From IMG/VR virus record IMGVR_UViG_3300021338_000003, positions 186,001-250,000 of that record: DNA of 64,000 bases. One strand, given 5' to 3'. The number at the start of each line of letters is the position of its first letter. The stretch's first letter is position 1. Shown one piece after another: positions 7,278 through 15,851 of this stretch. The position numbers and the translations under genes were made by a program. The notes under the pieces are model-generated. The model saw nothing but the letters and a program-made list of their open reading frames with translations, searched no databases and was not told the DNA's origin.

Positions 7278-7313
7278 GGCCCCACCGGAAATTCCGGTGG
7301 GGCCTTTGCTTTT
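7278..7313 (+). terminator. Rho-independent terminator
   Basis: ggccccaccgga-aat-tccggtggggcc followed by tttgctttt, downstream of the sigma-like gene. Confidence 0.8.
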
Positions 7314-7345
7314 GGTGATTAAAGGCCCCGTTTGTGAGGGTGCCC

Positions 7346-8155
7346 ATGGACTTACGCGGCCGTTATCTTATACTATCCGGCGGATCTGATGGTAGTCGTA
7401 GACAGGATATCTCCCATCTCATCGCTGCGGGCGGAGCCCACCTCAGCACTGTGACCGAGAGGGACGATCCAGAAGCCCTCAACGGATACCACACCAAGGT
7501 GACTGTCCTGTCCAGCATGGACTGCTTCGTGGGAAATCGAGGCAAGTTTGACTTCAAGGTGACTCTTTGGCGGGATGCCATGAGGGATTGTGCCCGACGC
7601 TGTGAGCTTGCCATGGAACGCGGGGTGTCCATAATAGTGATTGACGATCAACACAGCGAAAAGTGGATGGTCCAACCGTATTTGACTCTTGCTGATCGCT
7701 ACAAGTATGAAGTCATCTCCTTCCGAATGAATGACCAACGAAATTTGGGCCGAGAGAGCATGGTCAAGCACAAAGGCAACCCCATGCCTTTGAAGGAAGA
7801 ATGGAACCTGGTTGATGGGGATGGAGACCATGTCCAAGACCCCGCGGTTATTTCAGCCCTGACTGGATTCGTTATGGAGGATGTCGAGCCTGAAACCTTG
7901 GTAGAGGAAACCTCGTATGATGGAATGACAACGATCGTTATCACGGCCGTTCGTCCAGATTCTACATATCACCCCCAAAGATACGAAGTTGGCCTTAAGA
8001 AGGCTCTCGGTGTGAAGATGACCGAGGCCAAAAACATCCTCGCCGACTTGTGGGGTGAGAATGAGTATGTGAAGTCAGTGCCCATCAAGGATCTTAAGAA
8101 AATCCTCAATACACTAGAATCTCAGGGTTTCAGTGTCGAGGTACGTGATGTCTAA
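7346..8155 (+). CDS. Degenerate AAA_33/N4BP2-like P-loop domain fused to ribosomal L7/L12 CTD-like (or ClpS-like) domain
   Basis: YLILSGGSDGSRRQD in Walker A position, SIIVIDDQHSEKWMVQPYLTLADRYKYEV typical of this kinase family; C-terminal LGVKMTEAKNIL..VKSVPIKDLKKILNTLESQGFSVEVR resembles L7/L12 CTD. Confidence 0.6.
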   Translation: MDLRGRYLILSGGSDGSRRQDISHLIAAGGAHLSTVTERDDPEALNGYHTKVTVLSSMDCFVGNRGKFDFKVTLWRDAMRDCARRCELAMERGVSIIVIDDQHSEKWMVQPYLTLADRYKYEVISFRMNDQRNLGRESMVKHKGNPMPLKEEWNLVDGDGDHVQDPAVISALTGFVMEDVEPETLVEETSYDGMTTIVITAVRPDSTYHPQRYEVGLKKALGVKMTEAKNILADLWGENEYVKSVPIKDLKKILNTLESQGFSVEVRDV

Positions 8156-8831
8156 CAAAAAAGGTGGCCACCTTTCCTTGATTGATGGGTTTGCTCCTAA
8201 TGGGGAAACTGAGAGGTCCGGTCGTGCAGCCCTGAAAAAAGCTCGTGCATTGGCTGAAAAAGGCAAGGGGTCCAAAACCCTGGTGAGGGAAGCCGGGATT
8301 AATATAGAAGAGGCCCGAGAGATCGTCCAGGCATACCGGCGTGCTGCAACACGCCGAAGCTCAAAAGAAATCCTCGAAGACATGCTGGTTGGTACCCGGC
8401 AAATGCTACAAAAGGCCCGAGAAGGATTCATGGCAGACCCTTCGGGCAAGGCTGCCTATGCGGTATCAACCATTCTTTCCGAGCAGCGTTCCATCCTTGA
8501 AATGCTCAATAAGGAAAAGAAGCCTGAACAATTGGCCCTATCCATCCTACAGGACGCAGTCCAAATCCTTATCAAGGATATGCTTCGGGACACTGTTGAG
8601 GAGGCTCGGAAGGCTCAAGAGCGATGTGTAGCTGTTTCCTCTTCGACCAAACAAAGAGAAGCTGTCGAAAAAGCATTCGAGGATATGGCTAACGTCCTGG
8701 CCGATGCAACCGATGGTCACTACGAAAACGTAGCAAACCGTATTTGCGAAATTCAGAGCTGCAAGATCGAAGATGTACAGTCTCTTGCGGCCAAGATGGC
8801 CCTAGAAACCAACACCGGAGAAGGGTCATGA
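8148..8831 (+). CDS. Helical hypothetical protein, possible terminase small subunit
   Basis: All-helical 227 aa protein with N-terminal HTH-like segment, two genes upstream of terL; positional inference only. Confidence 0.35.
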   Translation: MSNKKGGHLSLIDGFAPNGETERSGRAALKKARALAEKGKGSKTLVREAGINIEEAREIVQAYRRAATRRSSKEILEDMLVGTRQMLQKAREGFMADPSGKAAYAVSTILSEQRSILEMLNKEKKPEQLALSILQDAVQILIKDMLRDTVEEARKAQERCVAVSSSTKQREAVEKAFEDMANVLADATDGHYENVANRICEIQSCKIEDVQSLAAKMALETNTGEGS

Positions 8832-9589
8832 ACAGAAGAGTTGAAGTCGAAGTTGAGGGTAAGACTCGCAGGTATATCTTGCACATCCCTGAACAATATC
8901 GAGCGAACCGTACTCTGCCCCTGATCATCGGATTTCATGGGGGAGGGGGGTCTGGAAAAATCTTCTCGAAGAAGTGGGTCAAGGCCCGAGATCGGGGCTT
9001 CCTGATGGCTTTTCCTTCGGCTGACTTGAATGGGGCCCGCAACTGGGTGGTTCCCAGTGATTCGCCGGACCCAGAGGTAGAAGACCGTTATCAGGACATC
9101 AAGTTTGTTCTAGGAATGATAGACGAAATCCGAAAGGAATTCAGTGTAGGGAAGGTGTTTGCCGCCGGATTTTCTTCTGGCGGCAAAATGACATGGGGTC
9201 TGTCCTTCCATGCCACCGAGCACTTTGATGGGTTTGCTATAGCTGGCAGTCTTATCAACAAACGTGCGGTGGCAACTGTCCCAAACAATTCTAAGCCCGT
9301 ATTTTTCACATCTGGTACGTACGACTCACATAATTATGTAATCAAGACCACCTTCAACCAGACTGTCCGCAAAATTATCTCGGATCGGTTCATGCAGAAT
9401 GAGATCCCCGAAAGGACTATCATTCCGAACACTGGCCGTTCAAACAATAGCCCCTCCACTTTTGTGAGAGAGGCTAGATACTCTCGGGCTCTTATTCACC
9501 AGCGGGTTAGGGGCACGCATGAATGGCCTACCGAAAACGAATACAATGCTACTTTGATTTCGTTCAATTTCTTTTCCAGTCTGCTCTGA
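8828..9589 (+). CDS. Alpha/beta hydrolase, LpqC / PHB-depolymerase-like esterase
   Basis: RRYILHIP..LPLIIGFHGGGGSG, nucleophile elbow AAGFSSGG, GTYD (Asp), GTHEWP (His); ATGA coupling at 8828. Confidence 0.8.
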   Translation: MNRRVEVEVEGKTRRYILHIPEQYRANRTLPLIIGFHGGGGSGKIFSKKWVKARDRGFLMAFPSADLNGARNWVVPSDSPDPEVEDRYQDIKFVLGMIDEIRKEFSVGKVFAAGFSSGGKMTWGLSFHATEHFDGFAIAGSLINKRAVATVPNNSKPVFFTSGTYDSHNYVIKTTFNQTVRKIISDRFMQNEIPERTIIPNTGRSNNSPSTFVREARYSRALIHQRVRGTHEWPTENEYNATLISFNFFSSLL

Positions 9590-9598
9590 GGTATCGAC

Positions 9599-12500
9599 TT
9601 GCTATCTCCCTCAGCCCTCAGTATGTCCGAAGATGATTTCCTTATGCGGATGTTCTACCATGTAGAACCCGAGGACTTGGAGAAGCTCTACCTTTGGGCT
9701 GGAGGAGACACAAGAAAACTTCGAGAGTTCTTGCAGATCGAGCTGTCAAGCAAGGAACTTGCCCGACGTCTGTATGAATCAGGCGTACAACTCATGCCCG
9801 AAGACCTCAAGAGAGCCAGGGTGGAGAGCCAAGAAGCCGTTCATAAGGCTGTAGCCAAATTCAGTTTGGGGGATGACTTTGACCCCGGTGAACTCATGAG
9901 AGAAGCGGCCGAGAAGAAACTCGACCCCTCGGTGTTTGCCGATATGGATTTTCGGGAAATCCCCAAAGCCAAAAACATCATTGACTGGATTACCAATAGG
10001 CAATTCCTCGATGCAGCGCCATTTCCCCGCCAGGTGCAATTCCTGCTGGCTCTATTTGAGGAGTGGTGCTTCTACTGCTCGGACGCCGAATTCGTCAAAG
10101 ATATCCATCTCTCCCCTTATATCGGTGAGGACGGAGAACATCGCCGGGCTTGGACCCTAGATGAAATCCTTGAGCGGGTACAACTCACCGAGCATGGTGT
10201 ATGCCCCAAATGCCACGCTACGTATCACCAGACGCTGGCTGACCCGGATGCACCTCACTGCGCCCCTAATGACTTTGCCCTCTGCTTGGGTCAGCGGTGT
10301 GTGGGCGCCAATACCATCGTCCCCACCAACCAGGGGTTGTCTCCTATATCCCGTTTGGTCCCCCGGAGAGAACCTGATACCTTCTACCCCACCCCTGGAC
10401 TGGAAGTGGCTAGTGGTGAGGGTGGGTCCTTGTCAGCGGAATCCTCCTATTATTCAGGGGTCCGGTCGGCCATCCAAATCGAAGCCGAGTGTGGATTTTC
10501 TCTTGAGGCCAGCTTGATTCATCCCGTCCTTGTATTGAGGGATGACAAACAGGTGTGGGTGAAAGCTTCGGATCTCAATGTAGGGGATGCCCTAGTGGTA
10601 TACCTTGGAGACAATGTCTGGGGAGACAAGGCGGAAATTTCCAACCAGGAAGCCTATGAAATGGGGGCCAAAGTGGCCCGGGACCCTACGTATTGGGGCA
10701 AGAGAGAAGAAACCATTTTCCAACATAGGCCGTCAGTTGTGGAGGCTTTTCTCAGGGGTCTTCAGGTAACCAAGGTCAAGAATACTGCGGATTCCCCTTG
10801 GAGCCGAAACCAAAAGACCACTTCCGAACGCGTCATCTCTACACCCTGGGAGAGTCTGGCCAGGTACGTCCAAGCCGCATACATCAACATGGGTCGATTC
10901 CCCTTCGTGACTCGCAAGGATGGCAAGTTTGTTATCTATGCCGGAGAAACGGCCACTGAAGGAGAGTGGTTCGTACGAGTCACCTCCACTCGATTCATTG
11001 GTGACCGACATCTCTTTGACTTTCACGTCCCAGAGAAGCACCGGTTCGTAGGAAACGGGCTCATCAACCACAACTCGGGTAAATCCCGCGTCGCTGAGTT
11101 CATTTCCTCCTACCAAAATCATCGATTCCAGATGCTGGCCCCCACTCCCCAACGACACTTCGGGGAAGATCGCACCCAGCAATTCACGGCGATGTTCACG
11201 GCCCTAGACCTGGCCCAGTCCGCTGACACCCTCTGGGGCAATTACCACATCCGACTTCAAACCGCCCCCTGGTTCAAGAAGTATCATGAGTGGCTCGATT
11301 ACCATGGCAAAAAGATCGGTGTCGAAATGTATCGCATCAAGGATACATACCATTCCTGGGTACCCACCATTCTACAAGATCGGCTCAAGCCTCCATTCGC
11401 CAAAGCCATGCGTGGTCGTACCGGCTATATGATGGGTATTGATGAGATCGGCATGTTCGCCAAAGCAGAAAACTCGGTACGTGCCAATGCTGAAGAAGTG
11501 TTCACTGCCATGAACAACACTCTGTTCACTTTGCGCGAGGCATCCGATGCTCTGAACCGGAAGGCAATCCACACTCCTACAGCTCTCATGATTTGTGTAT
11601 CCAGTCCTTGGGAGCTTTTGGACAAAATCATGGGTCTCATTCGAGGTGCCAAGGATAACCCCCGTCGTGTGGCCTTCCACTTCCCTACTTGGGAGTGCGT
11701 GGCCCCTGATACCCTGGTTCTGACCCCTGAAGGTCCCCTACCGATTGGGAACATAGCCCAAGAGGAAGGACTTCGGCCAGAATACTCCCGAGTTCATCTT
11801 GGCAGCAAGAATTCCTTTGGCTCGATTTCTCATGCCTTTCGCAGCCCCAAGGAACGATACGTTCGGACCATCACTACCGAAAGTGGCAATAACCTCACCG
11901 CCAGCCTAGACCACCGAATCCTGTCCATTCAAGATGACGGACGTATCGAGTTCACCAAAATGATGGACCTCAACCCAGAAGACACGGTTCTCGTATCCTG
12001 GGAGGGGCTACCCGAGCCGCAGGAAAACAGCCCGGTACCTGGGTCCACCAAGAAGCTCATTCACAGGCTATATGTACGCCTCGGGGCCGAAAGAGACCCC
12101 ATGGCAAACCGGTTGCGGGGTCAGGCCACGGTATACGACATCCGTACTCACTTGGCTCACTTGGAGCGGTCCTACCCTACAGCCTTCCATCGCAACTCGG
12201 CCCAGGTGGAAGAACTCCGAGAGTATTTTGGTCCATACATCTTCACCAAGATCTTCTCCATCACCGAGGGCAAGTCTGTGGTATGTGATATCACGGTACC
12301 TGGAGACCACCAGTATTGGTCCAACGGATTCATCAGCCACAACTGCAATCCCAAGATCTTCCGAGATTCCAAGCAGGTCGTGACCGAGTATGCTGAAGAC
12401 CCGGTCAAAGCTGACCGAGATTGGGCTGCCATCCCGCCCCTGGCTGATAACCCGTTCCACCAGAACACGGCCGCGCTAGACCAAATCCTTGAAGACTGCC

Positions 12501-13510
12501 GGGCCAGAAAGCCCCTGTTCGTTCAGGGCATGAAGACCGGGCAGTCCCGGGCAGGGCAACACTATGTGTACGCTGTCCCCAATCAGCTGCAGTCAGACAG
12601 GTCTATTCCCCGAATGATGACCATTGATGCCGGGGAGGTCAACAACTCTTTCGCCCTGAGCATCTGGTCTGTTGCTCGGGCCAAGTCTCCTGATGTCATG
12701 GGTGCCAGGGAGGAGGACCTTGGGTATGAGGAGGAAGAGGATGAAGATGTTCGTCGCATCCTTGCACTTCGGGATGAATACGAGGAGGAGGAAACCCAAA
12801 GCGAAGGCTCTAAGGGTATGTCCGACTACCTCAACCTTGATGGTATCATCGAGGTCATCCCTTTCAAAGACCAGGCTGGTAACCACCACAAGGTCAATTT
12901 TAAGAAGATGTACGACCTCTGCCTATTGCCCCTGGTGAGAAGCCTCAATGTCAAGCTTCTAGTGGCCGACCGGTGGAACATGGCCTCTATCTTTGATGGT
13001 CTGAGAGACGAGGGGGTTGATTGTCACCACTTCACCCTGAAGTGGAAGGACTTCATCGATTTTAAGCAAAAGCTTTCCTCCCGAGAGGTACAATTGCTTG
13101 GGTTGGAGAAGCCATATGAGTCTATCTTCGACGATTATGAACGGGCCATCTTCAACGCCCCCAACCTCCACCTTGTGGTGCAAACCAAGACCGTGCGACG
13201 CACTGGCCGTCAAGTAGTGAAGCCAAAGGGCGGAACCGACGACCTCTACCGCACCATGGTTCTGGCCCATCGCTTTGCTATGAATGACGACCCCAAGGAC
13301 CAAGCCTGTGACCCGAAGGGCGACCCCTATCTGGAAGTCCTGATGAGATATGGCCCCGGTGTGCATCCCCTGAATGCACACCGACCTGGAATCGGTGTAG
13401 TCCGTTTGCGGTCGAGCGGCCGTCCAATAGTCGGAAATAGCCAGGTCCAAGGTGTAGGTGGATTCCACTCGCGTACGCTTTCGGGACGCGCAAGAAAGAA
13501 GCGGAGATAG
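9599..13510 (+). CDS. terL: Terminase large subunit containing two inteins
   Basis: After removing inteins: Walker A GQR/SGKS, Walker B MMGIDEIG, PTWE/CNP, RuvC-like TIDAGEVNNSFA, DRWN, KGGTDDLYR; followed by portal. Confidence 0.88.
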   Translation: MLSPSALSMSEDDFLMRMFYHVEPEDLEKLYLWAGGDTRKLREFLQIELSSKELARRLYESGVQLMPEDLKRARVESQEAVHKAVAKFSLGDDFDPGELMREAAEKKLDPSVFADMDFREIPKAKNIIDWITNRQFLDAAPFPRQVQFLLALFEEWCFYCSDAEFVKDIHLSPYIGEDGEHRRAWTLDEILERVQLTEHGVCPKCHATYHQTLADPDAPHCAPNDFALCLGQRCVGANTIVPTNQGLSPISRLVPRREPDTFYPTPGLEVASGEGGSLSAESSYYSGVRSAIQIEAECGFSLEASLIHPVLVLRDDKQVWVKASDLNVGDALVVYLGDNVWGDKAEISNQEAYEMGAKVARDPTYWGKREETIFQHRPSVVEAFLRGLQVTKVKNTADSPWSRNQKTTSERVISTPWESLARYVQAAYINMGRFPFVTRKDGKFVIYAGETATEGEWFVRVTSTRFIGDRHLFDFHVPEKHRFVGNGLINHNSGKSRVAEFISSYQNHRFQMLAPTPQRHFGEDRTQQFTAMFTALDLAQSADTLWGNYHIRLQTAPWFKKYHEWLDYHGKKIGVEMYRIKDTYHSWVPTILQDRLKPPFAKAMRGRTGYMMGIDEIGMFAKAENSVRANAEEVFTAMNNTLFTLREASDALNRKAIHTPTALMICVSSPWELLDKIMGLIRGAKDNPRRVAFHFPTWECVAPDTLVLTPEGPLPIGNIAQEEGLRPEYSRVHLGSKNSFGSISHAFRSPKERYVRTITTESGNNLTASLDHRILSIQDDGRIEFTKMMDLNPEDTVLVSWEGLPEPQENSPVPGSTKKLIHRLYVRLGAERDPMANRLRGQATVYDIRTHLAHLERSYPTAFHRNSAQVEELREYFGPYIFTKIFSITEGKSVVCDITVPGDHQYWSNGFISHNCNPKIFRDSKQVVTEYAEDPVKADRDWAAIPPLADNPFHQNTAALDQILEDCRARKPLFVQGMKTGQSRAGQHYVYAVPNQLQSDRSIPRMMTIDAGEVNNSFALSIWSVARAKSPDVMGAREEDLGYEEEEDEDVRRILALRDEYEEEETQSEGSKGMSDYLNLDGIIEVIPFKDQAGNHHKVNFKKMYDLCLLPLVRSLNVKLLVADRWNMASIFDGLRDEGVDCHHFTLKWKDFIDFKQKLSSREVQLLGLEKPYESIFDDYERAIFNAPNLHLVVQTKTVRRTGRQVVKPKGGTDDLYRTMVLAHRFAMNDDPKDQACDPKGDPYLEVLMRYGPGVHPLNAHRPGIGVVRLRSSGRPIVGNSQVQGVGGFHSRTLSGRARKKRR
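10298..11074 (+). mobile_element. Intein 1 (259 aa) in TerL Walker A
   Basis: Begins CVGANTIV, ends RFVGNGLINHN followed by Ser; block B SLIHPVLV; splits GQR|SGKS. Confidence 0.9.
11696..12343 (+). mobile_element. Intein 2 (216 aa) in TerL
   Basis: Begins CVAPDTLVLT, block B TASLDHRIL, block F VCDITV, ends YWSNGFISHN followed by Cys. Confidence 0.9.
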
Positions 13511-13512
13511 AA

Positions 13513-13800
13513 ATGGCCAGGAGAAAAACGGATAGGCTTTCTGCTCTAGAACGAGCCGGCTTTCGGACTGGTGAGGCTCGCAAAAACTCCTATGACCAAC
13601 TTGTAGAGGCATCCCACAAGAATCGGATCGAGGCTTTTGTCTATACTCATCCCTCTGGAACTTCCCGGGAGTCTACCGAGGCTGCCCACAGTTGCCCCCG
13701 TTGCGGTAAGGACATGAATTGGGTTCGCCTGGCCTCCGAAGAGAAGGCTGGATATTGTGTTCCCTGCCGCTACACTCTTCCGGTGCCCCAGGACGACTGA
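13513..13800 (+). CDS. Zn-ribbon protein
   Basis: CPRC...YCVPCR; GGAG SD; coupled to portal start. Confidence 0.7.
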   Translation: MARRKTDRLSALERAGFRTGEARKNSYDQLVEASHKNRIEAFVYTHPSGTSRESTEAAHSCPRCGKDMNWVRLASEEKAGYCVPCRYTLPVPQDD

Positions 13801-15851
13801 TGTTCAAGACATTCTCGAATGACAAAAGGTCTGTGTTTGGGTCCGGAACCCCTGCACACGCCATCCGCAAGTCCAAGGGGGCAGCAGCTGTCACCGCCGG
13901 CAATATTCGTCGGTCCAAAAACAGTGAAAGGGACTTCATCAACAAGGTGGTTACTGCCCAATCCGACTTCGGGCTGGACCGATACAACCCGGTGCACGAT
14001 GACCTTGAGGAAGGATCGGTTGTTGAGAACTGGGTCCCAAAGGACCTCCCCAGTCTCAATCGGCTGATGCGCCGCATCTATCGTCGAGACGATGTCGGCG
14101 GCCCAATGGTCGACATCTATCAGGAAATGGCATGGTCAGACTACGATCTGACCGGCATGGAAGACGAGGCCATGTACGAGCCATATGCTCAGTCCCTGGC
14201 CAACCTCAACCCTATGGACTGGATGCCTGATATTTCAAATACCGTCTTGGTGGACGGTCGCGGTATCTATGGTCTCCTGTTCGATGAGGCTGAGGGGGTA
14301 TTCACAGGCTCTGTCCCTCATGATTCCTCCTTCTGTCGAATCACCCCTGTCCCTATCTTCGGGCAGGACCCCTTGGTTGACATCCAGGCCAGCCCGGTGT
14401 GGCGCAACTTCGCCACCAGCAACGACCCTCGTATGGCGGAGATGCGAAGCTCCCTGCCCCCGAACATTCTCAAAGTTCTTCGAGACAACACGGGATATAC
14501 CCCCCTTGATCCTCTGAGCACCGTCATTGTACGTCGGCAAGCTTCGGCTCATGACCACCTAGGAACCTCAATATACACCCGCCTCATCAACTTCATTGCC
14601 ATCCAGAAGGCTCTAATTGATACCACTGTCATAGCCCTTCGTCGGCGTGGCGCTGGCCTCCTGCATATCCAAGTTGGCAACGAGGTGTGGGAACCTACTG
14701 ATGACCAGTTGGACGCCATCGCCGCCATGTGGATGGGTGCCGAGGAGGACCCGGGCGGTGGTGTTGTGGTGACTCGCAACGGAATCCAAGCAGACCGAAG
14801 CCAAAGTGCTGTTGGTGACATCTGGAAATTCAGTGACGAATATCCCTTCCTATCCGAGGGGAAGATGCGGTCCTTGGGAATTTCCGATGCCTTTCTATCT
14901 GGGGATGCCACGTACAATAACATGGCCAACGCCCTGTCGGTCTTCATGGAGCGTCTGCGTGGTTTCCGCATGCGCATCACGAACAAGGTGCTAGTGCAGC
15001 GGGTGTTCCACACCCTGGCTCGGGTCCACGGATATATCAAGCCCGAAAAGAACTCCCCGCAGGGTCGCCGTCAAGCCTTCTTGATGCCTCTACGTCAGGC
15101 CCTCGAAGTCCCTGCTGACCGCCTCATTGTGCCTGACATCCATTGGCACAAGAGCCTTCAGCCTCAGGGTGATGAGGAGCTGATCCGTCTCCTTGAAACC
15201 CTGAAGGAGAACGGACTGCCGGTCACCAAGCAGCACTTCGCTGCTGCCGCCGGGTTCAACCTCAACAAAGCCATGGATATGCTTGAGGATGACATCAAGC
15301 AGGAAGAGGAAGTTCGGAAGTGGCGAGCTGAGATTGAAGGTGGTGACGAGGAAGGGATTTTTGGTCGGGTCCGTCTCGTACCCCACACCATCCAGCAAAT
15401 CAAGAAGCCTCGGGAACTCCGTGTTGCAGCCTCGAAGGCCCTGGAGGACCTCGGGTTCTTCCGGAACGGACCCTTCCTGGGACTATCTCTCCAGCGTGCC
15501 CAACGGGCCCTAGACCGGATGCTACCCGACCTGAAGAGGGATGGAGAACGGGCACCCTTGCGGACCATCATGGCCGATGTTGACCTGGAACGAGAGCAAC
15601 GCAATGTTATGCGCTACCTCTTGGTCCGACTAGGCTTCGCACCCTCCTACCAAATGAACGACCAGCGCCTCGAAAGAGTGGCTCGGGCTATTGCACAAGC
15701 GCTCCCGGCCCGTGAAGCCCACCAGGAGATTGAGCTTCTAGTGAAGGTCTGCGGGGGTAAGAAGGAGCATTACGCCGAGCGCGTAACACGTCTCCCTAAC
15801 GGTCCGAGTGGGGCTCATCTCCTCACGGGTTATGTTCCGCCAGGAATGTAA
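13800..15851 (+). CDS. Portal protein
   Basis: Follows terL; portal-like sequence IYTRL..LGISDAFLSGDATYNN..VFMERLRGFRMRITNKVL; ATGA-coupled start at 13800 (track 13719). Confidence 0.75.
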   Translation: MFKTFSNDKRSVFGSGTPAHAIRKSKGAAAVTAGNIRRSKNSERDFINKVVTAQSDFGLDRYNPVHDDLEEGSVVENWVPKDLPSLNRLMRRIYRRDDVGGPMVDIYQEMAWSDYDLTGMEDEAMYEPYAQSLANLNPMDWMPDISNTVLVDGRGIYGLLFDEAEGVFTGSVPHDSSFCRITPVPIFGQDPLVDIQASPVWRNFATSNDPRMAEMRSSLPPNILKVLRDNTGYTPLDPLSTVIVRRQASAHDHLGTSIYTRLINFIAIQKALIDTTVIALRRRGAGLLHIQVGNEVWEPTDDQLDAIAAMWMGAEEDPGGGVVVTRNGIQADRSQSAVGDIWKFSDEYPFLSEGKMRSLGISDAFLSGDATYNNMANALSVFMERLRGFRMRITNKVLVQRVFHTLARVHGYIKPEKNSPQGRRQAFLMPLRQALEVPADRLIVPDIHWHKSLQPQGDEELIRLLETLKENGLPVTKQHFAAAAGFNLNKAMDMLEDDIKQEEEVRKWRAEIEGGDEEGIFGRVRLVPHTIQQIKKPRELRVAASKALEDLGFFRNGPFLGLSLQRAQRALDRMLPDLKRDGERAPLRTIMADVDLEREQRNVMRYLLVRLGFAPSYQMNDQRLERVARAIAQALPAREAHQEIELLVKVCGGKKEHYAERVTRLPNGPSGAHLLTGYVPPGM

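Follow-up and report, generated by a model that had tools for sequence, protein, structure and literature searches.

An uncultured marine jumbo phage encodes a protein in which a P-loop kinase fold with a remodelled phosphate loop is joined, through an acidic tether predicted to be disordered, to a small head with the fold shared by ClpS and the C-terminal domain (CTD) of ribosomal protein bL12. Its gene lies within a 64,000-nucleotide stretch, here called the window, which corresponds to bases 186001-250000 of the 250.8-kb viral record IMGVR_UViG_3300021338_000003 (completeness estimate 91%). The 269-residue product, P0001, is a real, conserved and rare two-domain phage protein, and represents a new combination of well-known folds. 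Direct support extends to the folds, the altered loop, the conservation of both across a small family and a conserved upstream neighbour. As to function, the protein is tentatively read, with somewhat less than even confidence, as a non-catalytic tethered adaptor used in infection.

The domain architecture is most visible in an AlphaFold2 model built on a 38-sequence alignment, which superseded a single-sequence run with a predicted local distance difference test (pLDDT) score of 39. Mean pLDDT in the final model is 82.7, with values of about 90 for residues 1-148, below 50 for residues 163-187 and above 90 for residues 190-269. In an all-against-representatives structural search with this model, the two domains were matched separately. 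The N-terminal domain shows a three-layer P-loop kinase fold with a lid, and its nearest folds are those of T4 PNK, CthPnk, PSTK, Kti12 and the fungal tRNA-ligase kinase. Residues 190-269 are modelled with a b-a-a-b-a-b topology, consistent with the fold of the bL12 CTD (PF00542) and with the core fold of ClpS (PF02617). Every structural match that aligned wholly within the C-terminal domain (residues 180-269) was either ClpS or bL12, with ClpS chains outscoring L12.

Supporting this, an independent ESM Atlas model of residues 190-269 aligned with template modelling (TM) scores of 0.66-0.77 to a viral ClpS cluster and to several non-ribosomal L12-like clusters, among them fusions to TIR, zinc ribbons and DUF898. 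In BFVD, phage kinases match the N-terminal domain and phage ClpS proteins match the C-terminal domain (E 6e-5 to 1e-3), and no protein with both domains was found there. Searching the Atlas with the AlphaFold2 model gave kinase-domain matches only, among the matches listed. The combination of a kinase with a ClpS/L12 head was likewise found neither in the PDB nor in BFVD, nor in the ESM Atlas among the matches listed. An earlier note on this DNA had proposed a P-loop kinase fused to an L12-CTD/ClpS-like domain; the AlphaFold2 and Atlas models and the structural search bear this out at the level of the predicted fold. A C-terminal domain with neither fold, the outcome that would have spoken against the note, was not seen in the structure search.

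Relatives were collected through an exhaustive phmmer search against 1.84 billion cluster representatives, which returned 43 proteins at a cut-off of E<=1e-3. The whole architecture is present in eight relatives, all metagenomic (seven complete proteins of 269-323 residues and one 240-residue fragment), with full-length alignment identities of 23-35%. The other matches are mostly small canonical kinases (124-266 residues) that match residues ~50-135 and carry G-S-G-K-[ST]; AAA_33-type kinases account for about 35 of the matches. Counts given below refer to nine family members including P0001, eight of which cover the phosphate loop.

The loop itself sets this family apart. As the earlier note had claimed, the Walker A position of P0001 has no GK[ST], and in place of G-x-x-x-x-G-K-[ST] it reads G13-S-D-G-S-R18-R19-Q20 (Table 1). 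The family loop follows the pattern G13-x-x-G-[ST]-R18-[RK]-x-[DE], against a canonical G-x-x-G-S-G-K-[ST] in the relatives. The glycine that precedes the Walker A lysine is replaced by arginine (R18) in all eight members covering the loop. At the lysine position, six members have arginine, one has threonine and one, P0012, keeps lysine within R-K-S. Four members retain T or S at the Mg-binding Ser/Thr position, and the remaining four carry Q, K, R or E. The Walker B aspartate has been lost in three family members. Because the changed loop is common to the family members, it is best seen as a conserved trait, rebuilt and held under selection rather than decaying. The Pfam AAA_33 model (PF13671) reaches four of the nine members (best E 3.7e-5) and gives no match to P0001 at E<=10.

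Residues H49, S56, D59, D81, R84, R85, M90, Y121, E122 and R132 are invariant in the family, and five of these (D59, D81, R84, R85 and R132) line the cleft. The first aspartate of the canonical S-A-D-D motif, which we take to be the phosphoryl-acceptor-activating D35 of T4 Pnk, falls in a column where MAFFT places M58, and the invariant D59 occupies the next column. P0001 itself, with its Q20, is unlikely to carry out canonical Mg-ATP chemistry, and the loss of the Lys and Ser/Thr suggests that the N-terminal domain is non-catalytic. Judging from the residues retained, some ligand-binding role for the kinase cleft is likely. The label of a "dead" kinase, used in the earlier note, therefore holds for the missing GK[ST] and fails as a description of decay: the loop is conserved, the cleft residues are invariant and P0012 retains R-K-S, so that the domain is better called remodelled.

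A separate observation concerns P0005, a 305-residue metagenomic protein in which two kinase domains, both from this clade, are arranged in tandem. Walker A is altered in each of them (first domain, G-L-P-R-T-F-K-S; second domain, G-V-P-G-S-G-R-A), indicating that degenerate loops are a recurrent feature among the small phage kinases of the clade.

The sequence of the C-terminal domain is far less informative than its fold. The strings LGVKMTEAKNIL (residues 221-232) and VPIKDLKKILNTLESQGFSVEVR (residues 245-267), which the earlier note likened to L7/L12, are present in the last 77 residues of P0001 and the fold is real, but the likeness does not rise above chance as sequence: BLASTP against E. 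coli L12 gave E=1.5 in a different register, and against ClpS it gave no alignment. The hidden Markov model (HMM) comparison that the note had proposed also came back empty, with no match of P0001 to the Pfam Ribosomal_L12 and ClpS models at E<=10. A profile of the nine C-terminal domains retrieved no L12 or ClpS chain from the PDB, and neither did phmmer. In hhalign, the family domain gave P values of 0.007-0.012 against L12, local to helix 3 and strand 3, and of 0.03-0.15 against ClpS, with probabilities <4%; the L12-CTD and ClpS comparison alignments were drawn from E. coli and from viral contigs found by E. coli-derived patterns, and are thus biased to close relatives. By sequence the domain is neither L12 nor ClpS, and the most fitting description is that of an orphan family within the ClpS/L12-CTD fold. 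As it lies below the reach of sequence models, domains of this fold are probably under-counted in phage genomes.

Table 1. Coordinates in the window of P0001, its domains and motifs, and the adjacent elements.
Feature	Position	Strand	Remarks
Open reading frame of P0001, 269 amino acids	7346..8155, stop codon included	+	ATG at 7346; TAA at 8153-8155
Shine-Dalgarno-like GAGGG	7336..7340	+	5 nucleotides 5' of the ATG; homologues likewise begin M-x-L-x-G-R-Y-L
N-terminal domain, residues 1-148	7346..7789	+	Predicted PNK / N4BP2L1 (AAA_33-type) P-loop kinase fold
Walker A position GGSDGSRRQD, residues 12-21	7379..7408	+	Gly to Arg18, Lys to Arg19, Ser/Thr to Gln20; aligned against GSGK[ST] of ~30 canonical small kinases
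Signature HLIAAGGAHLSTVTE on extended P-loop helix	7415..7459	+	A27, G29, A31, L33 and S34 invariant; A-G-G-x-A-x-L-S-T; missing from canonical small kinases
LSSMDCF motif	7508..7528	+	S56 and D59 invariant; at the place of the canonical S-A-D-D motif; offset by one in MAFFT
Helix with invariant D81, R84, R85, M90	7586..7615	+	
Walker-B-like strand SIIVIDDQH	7628..7654	+	Strand E96-101 in the model
Acidic linker, predicted disordered, residues 149-192	7790..7921	+	Net charge -12; pLDDT <50 for residues 163-187
Linker motif W153-x-L155 ... D-G-x-x-V163-x-x-P	7796..7843	+	Directly after the kinase domain; family consensus W-x-L-E-x-x-D-G-x-F-V-x-P-E
C-terminal domain, residues 193-269 (77 residues)	7922..8152	+	b-a-a-b-a-b; predicted ClpS / bL12-CTD fold
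Helix alpha-2 KMTEAKNILADLW	8015..8053	+	Resembles L12 helix-5 motif LKEAKDLVE; E227 in 5/9 and a basic residue at 229 in 7/9 members
Helix alpha-3 and strand beta-3, PIKDLKKILNTLESQG / FSVEVR	8081..8146	+	Sole stretch with a weak L12 profile match, P=0.012
Upstream partner gene, 441 amino acids	5900..7225	+	Starts at the Met matching orthologues' starts; CxxC...CxxC zinc ribbon; C-terminal helix-turn-helix (HTH)-like stretch
Terminator-like hairpin 7278-7304 and T-rich tail	7278..7314	+	12-base-pair stem, 10 GC pairs; between partner gene and P0001
Downstream gene, 227 amino acids	8148..8831	+	Helical, HTH-like N-terminus; ATG overlaps the P0001 stop; 8-nucleotide overlap ATGTCTAA

Taken as an adaptor, P0001 would be a phage-specific protein of three parts: the kinase-fold domain, a 44-residue acidic disordered tether and the 77-residue head. 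The N-terminal domain would not carry out canonical Mg-ATP phosphotransfer and would instead bind or anchor by way of its conserved cleft (D59, D81, R84, R85, R132), whose candidate ligands are the end of a nucleic acid, a nucleotide or phospho-ligand, and a partner from the phage. The head would swing on its tether as the CTD of bL12 does on its hinge, docking onto a protein partner. The bL12 CTD docks translational GTPases, and ClpS docks both the N-domain of ClpA and N-degrons; because both known families of this fold dock proteins, a protein-docking role is suggested for the head of P0001 too. The tether is a family trait, being 42-73 residues long with a net charge of -3 to -12 in every member, and within its motif L155 is kept in eight of nine members and V163 in all nine.

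Several points weigh against the adaptor. P0012 retains R-K-S, and the invariant Asp and Arg residues of the cleft would equally suit an enzyme that is still active. The ClpS pocket and the L12 helix-4 residues are unconserved, so known interfaces give no basis for inferring docking. With an isoelectric point of about 8, the domains are not basic and thus carry no strong nucleic-acid-binding signal, and no binding partner or ligand was found for P0001.

Among the alternatives, the first is that P0001 remains enzymatically active as a kinase or NTPase whose phosphate loop is non-canonical; its tethered head would hold a second substrate site much as the tethered C-terminal domain of PSTK or Kti12 holds tRNA. 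This is unlikely. In its favour, the nearest folds of the N-terminal domain all act on nucleic-acid substrates, the cleft residues are invariant, and three members besides P0012, with its Lys-Ser, retain the Thr. The weak PHROG matches of P0001, to an ATPase and an RNA-ligase family, point the same way. The loop argues otherwise, with its Gly-to-Arg change in every member, its replaced lysine (Arg in six of eight, Thr in one) and the Q, K, R or E that takes the Ser/Thr position in four. No RNA ligase homologue was found in the phage's own genome (nor one of ClpS, ClpP, bpMoxR or MoxR), and to our knowledge RNA binding has not been reported for the ClpS/L12 fold. PSTK is also an imperfect guide to the head. 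Its C-terminal domain has been described as a helix bundle, which is another fold (PMC3035459), and the structural alignment to 3a4l_A spans model residues 5-169 only. On account of this helix bundle, the idea that P0001 is PSTK-like in both domains was rejected; the C-terminal domain of P0001 is alpha/beta.

A second alternative looks to the genomic neighbourhood. The upstream gene encodes a zinc-ribbon/HTH-like protein, with orthologues of 441-488 residues that are 29-42% identical and share two invariant CxxC pairs. This gene lies upstream of the family member in all seven readable loci, namely the window, L005 (5813-7219), L006 (4962-6401), L007 (3-1439), L009 (4231-5664), L102 and L104, even though the phages concerned share just 25-54% identity in the P0001 protein. 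In three of these loci, a MoxR-type AAA+ gene (595-661 residues; Pfam bpMoxR or AAA_5) directly precedes the pair (L009:2417-4204, L102:303-2099 and L104:2450-4435), so that the three genes make up a block. P0001 might therefore be the working partner of this protein, regulating or assisting it, a reading that is distinctly unlikely as matters stand. The C-terminal part of the neighbour bears a weak likeness to sigma-E region 4 (hhalign P=0.09), and on sequence grounds the protein could act as a transcription factor of the phage. Family and structure searches gave nothing significant for it, however, and tblastn gave no match in cultured phages. Two or three small genes intervene between the two genes in L005 and L006. 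In the window, they are separated by a strong terminator-like hairpin, and a stable hairpin between genes that are syntenic in seven phages suggests either separate transcription here or regulated read-through. An 8-mer search found no shared promoter motif 5' of genes. As a further observation on the neighbour, its stretch DPSFDG..EL..EA.R.A..Y..FPD..R...Y reads like sigma region 2.

Two narrower readings assign the head to a known partner. In the first, proposed in the earlier note, the C-terminal domain would mimic the CTD of the ribosomal stalk protein bL12 and capture or recruit translational GTPases (EF-G, EF-Tu and IF2, as named in the note, and also RF3), with the pseudo-kinase as a scaffold. 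The L12-like fusions among the nearest Atlas clusters, the anchor-hinge-CTD layout, and the existence of phage proteins with embedded bL12 domains (PMC6375957; also contigs L021, L022 and L024) fit this idea. At the sequence level, alpha-2 has MTEAK where L12 has LKEAK, and alpha-3 and beta-3 give the weak profile match listed in Table 1. In the hhalign register, P0001 retains the E-A-K of L12 helix 5 and its family does so in part, but helix 4 has given way to x-W-x-F-L in the family consensus; the helix-4 residues of L12, V66, I69, K70 and R73, presumably make the contacts with translation factors. The bL12 domains known from phages share 30-40% identity with cellular bL12, while the head of P0001 is undetectable by sequence, whether by the Ribosomal_L12 model or in the PDB searches, and ClpS chains score higher in structure. 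The N-terminal dimerisation/uL10-binding domain of L12 is also missing, its place being taken by the kinase-fold domain. With these discrepancies, mimicry of the ribosomal stalk is very unlikely.

The second, also raised in the earlier note, would make the head a ClpS-like adaptor docking to the N-domain of a ClpA-type unfoldase of the host, where it would deliver, or else shield, cargo bound by the N-terminal domain of P0001. Phage ClpS proteins are matched both in BFVD and in the Atlas (TM 0.71/0.72), and jumbo phages often encode a ClpS of their own (PMC7824862), none being recognisable in this phage. The functional residues do not follow. The N-degron pocket motif N-D-D-x-T-x-M and His66, found in every ClpS of the comparison alignment, are missing from P0001, which has R-P-D-S-T-Y-H at that place, and the position is unconserved in the family. 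Added to the lack of a ClpS model match, the hhalign P of just 0.03-0.15 and the failure to find a ClpP in the phage genome, this makes a ClpS-type adaptor quite improbable. Held with just as little confidence is the bolder idea of a new type of phage takeover factor that would imitate, free of the ribosome or protease, the principle of the stalk or of ClpS; its tethered head would seize a translational GTPase or Clp-type unfoldase of the host and couple it to cargo in the kinase cleft (an RNA or DNA end, or the zinc-ribbon protein), redirecting translation or proteolysis with no enzymatic step. These readings overlap, as the tethered adaptor is the general form of the neighbour-partner, L12 and ClpS readings, and the confidence attached to each is not mutually exclusive.

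The family appears to be confined to a handful of uncultured large phages. For P0001, neither the whole protein nor either half has a significant match in Pfam, NCBIfam or PHROGs. A word-index protein search, run with the full sequence and with each half separately, found P0001 itself and no other, and a PDB sequence search gave no matches. The family was found neither in cultured phages (tblastn with P0001) nor in 185,579 GTDB species genomes. Scans of IMG/VR with the protein and with the family alignment found its own contig and no further carrier, and a JGI metagenome scan found this contig and one other, L009. The contigs that bear family members are phage-like, with intein-bearing terminase, portal, HNH, NUDIX and DUF5661 genes.

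The phage of the window is a large, myovirus-type marine phage known from seawater metagenomes, and contigs from two other seawater runs contain DNA identical to that of the P0001 open reading frame (ORF). The codon-position GC of this ORF (0.58/0.37/0.57) is similar to that of the long ORFs of this phage. The portal protein (window 13719-15851) is 27-33% identical to the portals of Ralstonia phage phiRSL1, Rhizobium phage RHph_N46, Vibrio phage GR11A and Erwinia jumbo phages.

Downstream of P0001, the 227-residue gene is conserved only in the closest relative, L005, where it occupies the same place with 49% identity. From its position two genes before the large terminase, its product could be a small terminase subunit. 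Between this putative small terminase-like gene and the large terminase lies an ORF (8744-9589, +) of 281 residues that is alpha/beta-hydrolase-like, with G-F-H-G-G-G-G-S-G and G-F-S-S-G-G, and has a weak Pfam dienelactone-hydrolase match (E=0.003). The large terminase ORF (9599-13510, +; 1303 residues) contains two apparent intein-like insertions (Cys ... His-Asn then Ser or Cys), and its 1311-residue orthologue in L005 has Pfam Intein_splicing (weak) and LAGLIDADG_3 matches.

Compared with known systems, each part of P0001 departs from its nearest counterpart. Relative to AAA_33 (N4BP2L1-like) kinases and the kinase domain of T4 PNK, it has G-x-x-G-S-R-R-Q in the loop and an extra A-G-G-x-A-x-L-S-T after the loop helix, adds the linker and a C-terminal domain, and is out of reach of the AAA_33 model. 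PSTK and Kti12 both keep a canonical Walker A, whereas P0001 does not. ClpS, the ClpAP adaptor, has a short N-terminal extension, whereas the head of P0001 is fused behind a kinase-like domain and lacks a ClpS sequence-model match, the N-degron pocket motif and His66. Compared with the bL12 CTD, it lacks an HMM match, the dimerisation/uL10-binding domain and the conserved helix-4 residues.

Phage-borne domains of both kinds have been described in sequence-recognisable form. Mizuno et al. reported phage proteins with embedded bL12 domains (PMC6375957), and Iyer et al. phage ClpS genes, including jumbo-phage ClpS (PMC7824862); the architecture of P0001 is described in neither. The three IMG/VR contigs named above, L021, L022 and L024 (344, 183 and 390 kb), carry recognisable bL12 CTDs (GLKEAKDLVE) placed N- or C-terminally in longer ORFs that are unrelated, an arrangement that Mizuno et al. 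had reported from cultured phages.

Like bL12 and PSTK, P0001 combines an anchor domain with a flexible hinge and a small head. Should this head dock on a host machine, the family would be one of few P-loop pseudo-kinases, as opposed to those of the protein-kinase fold, with a defined role, and would offer a compact model of how phages re-use the "tethered fishing domain" principle seen in the ribosomal stalk and in Clp adaptors.
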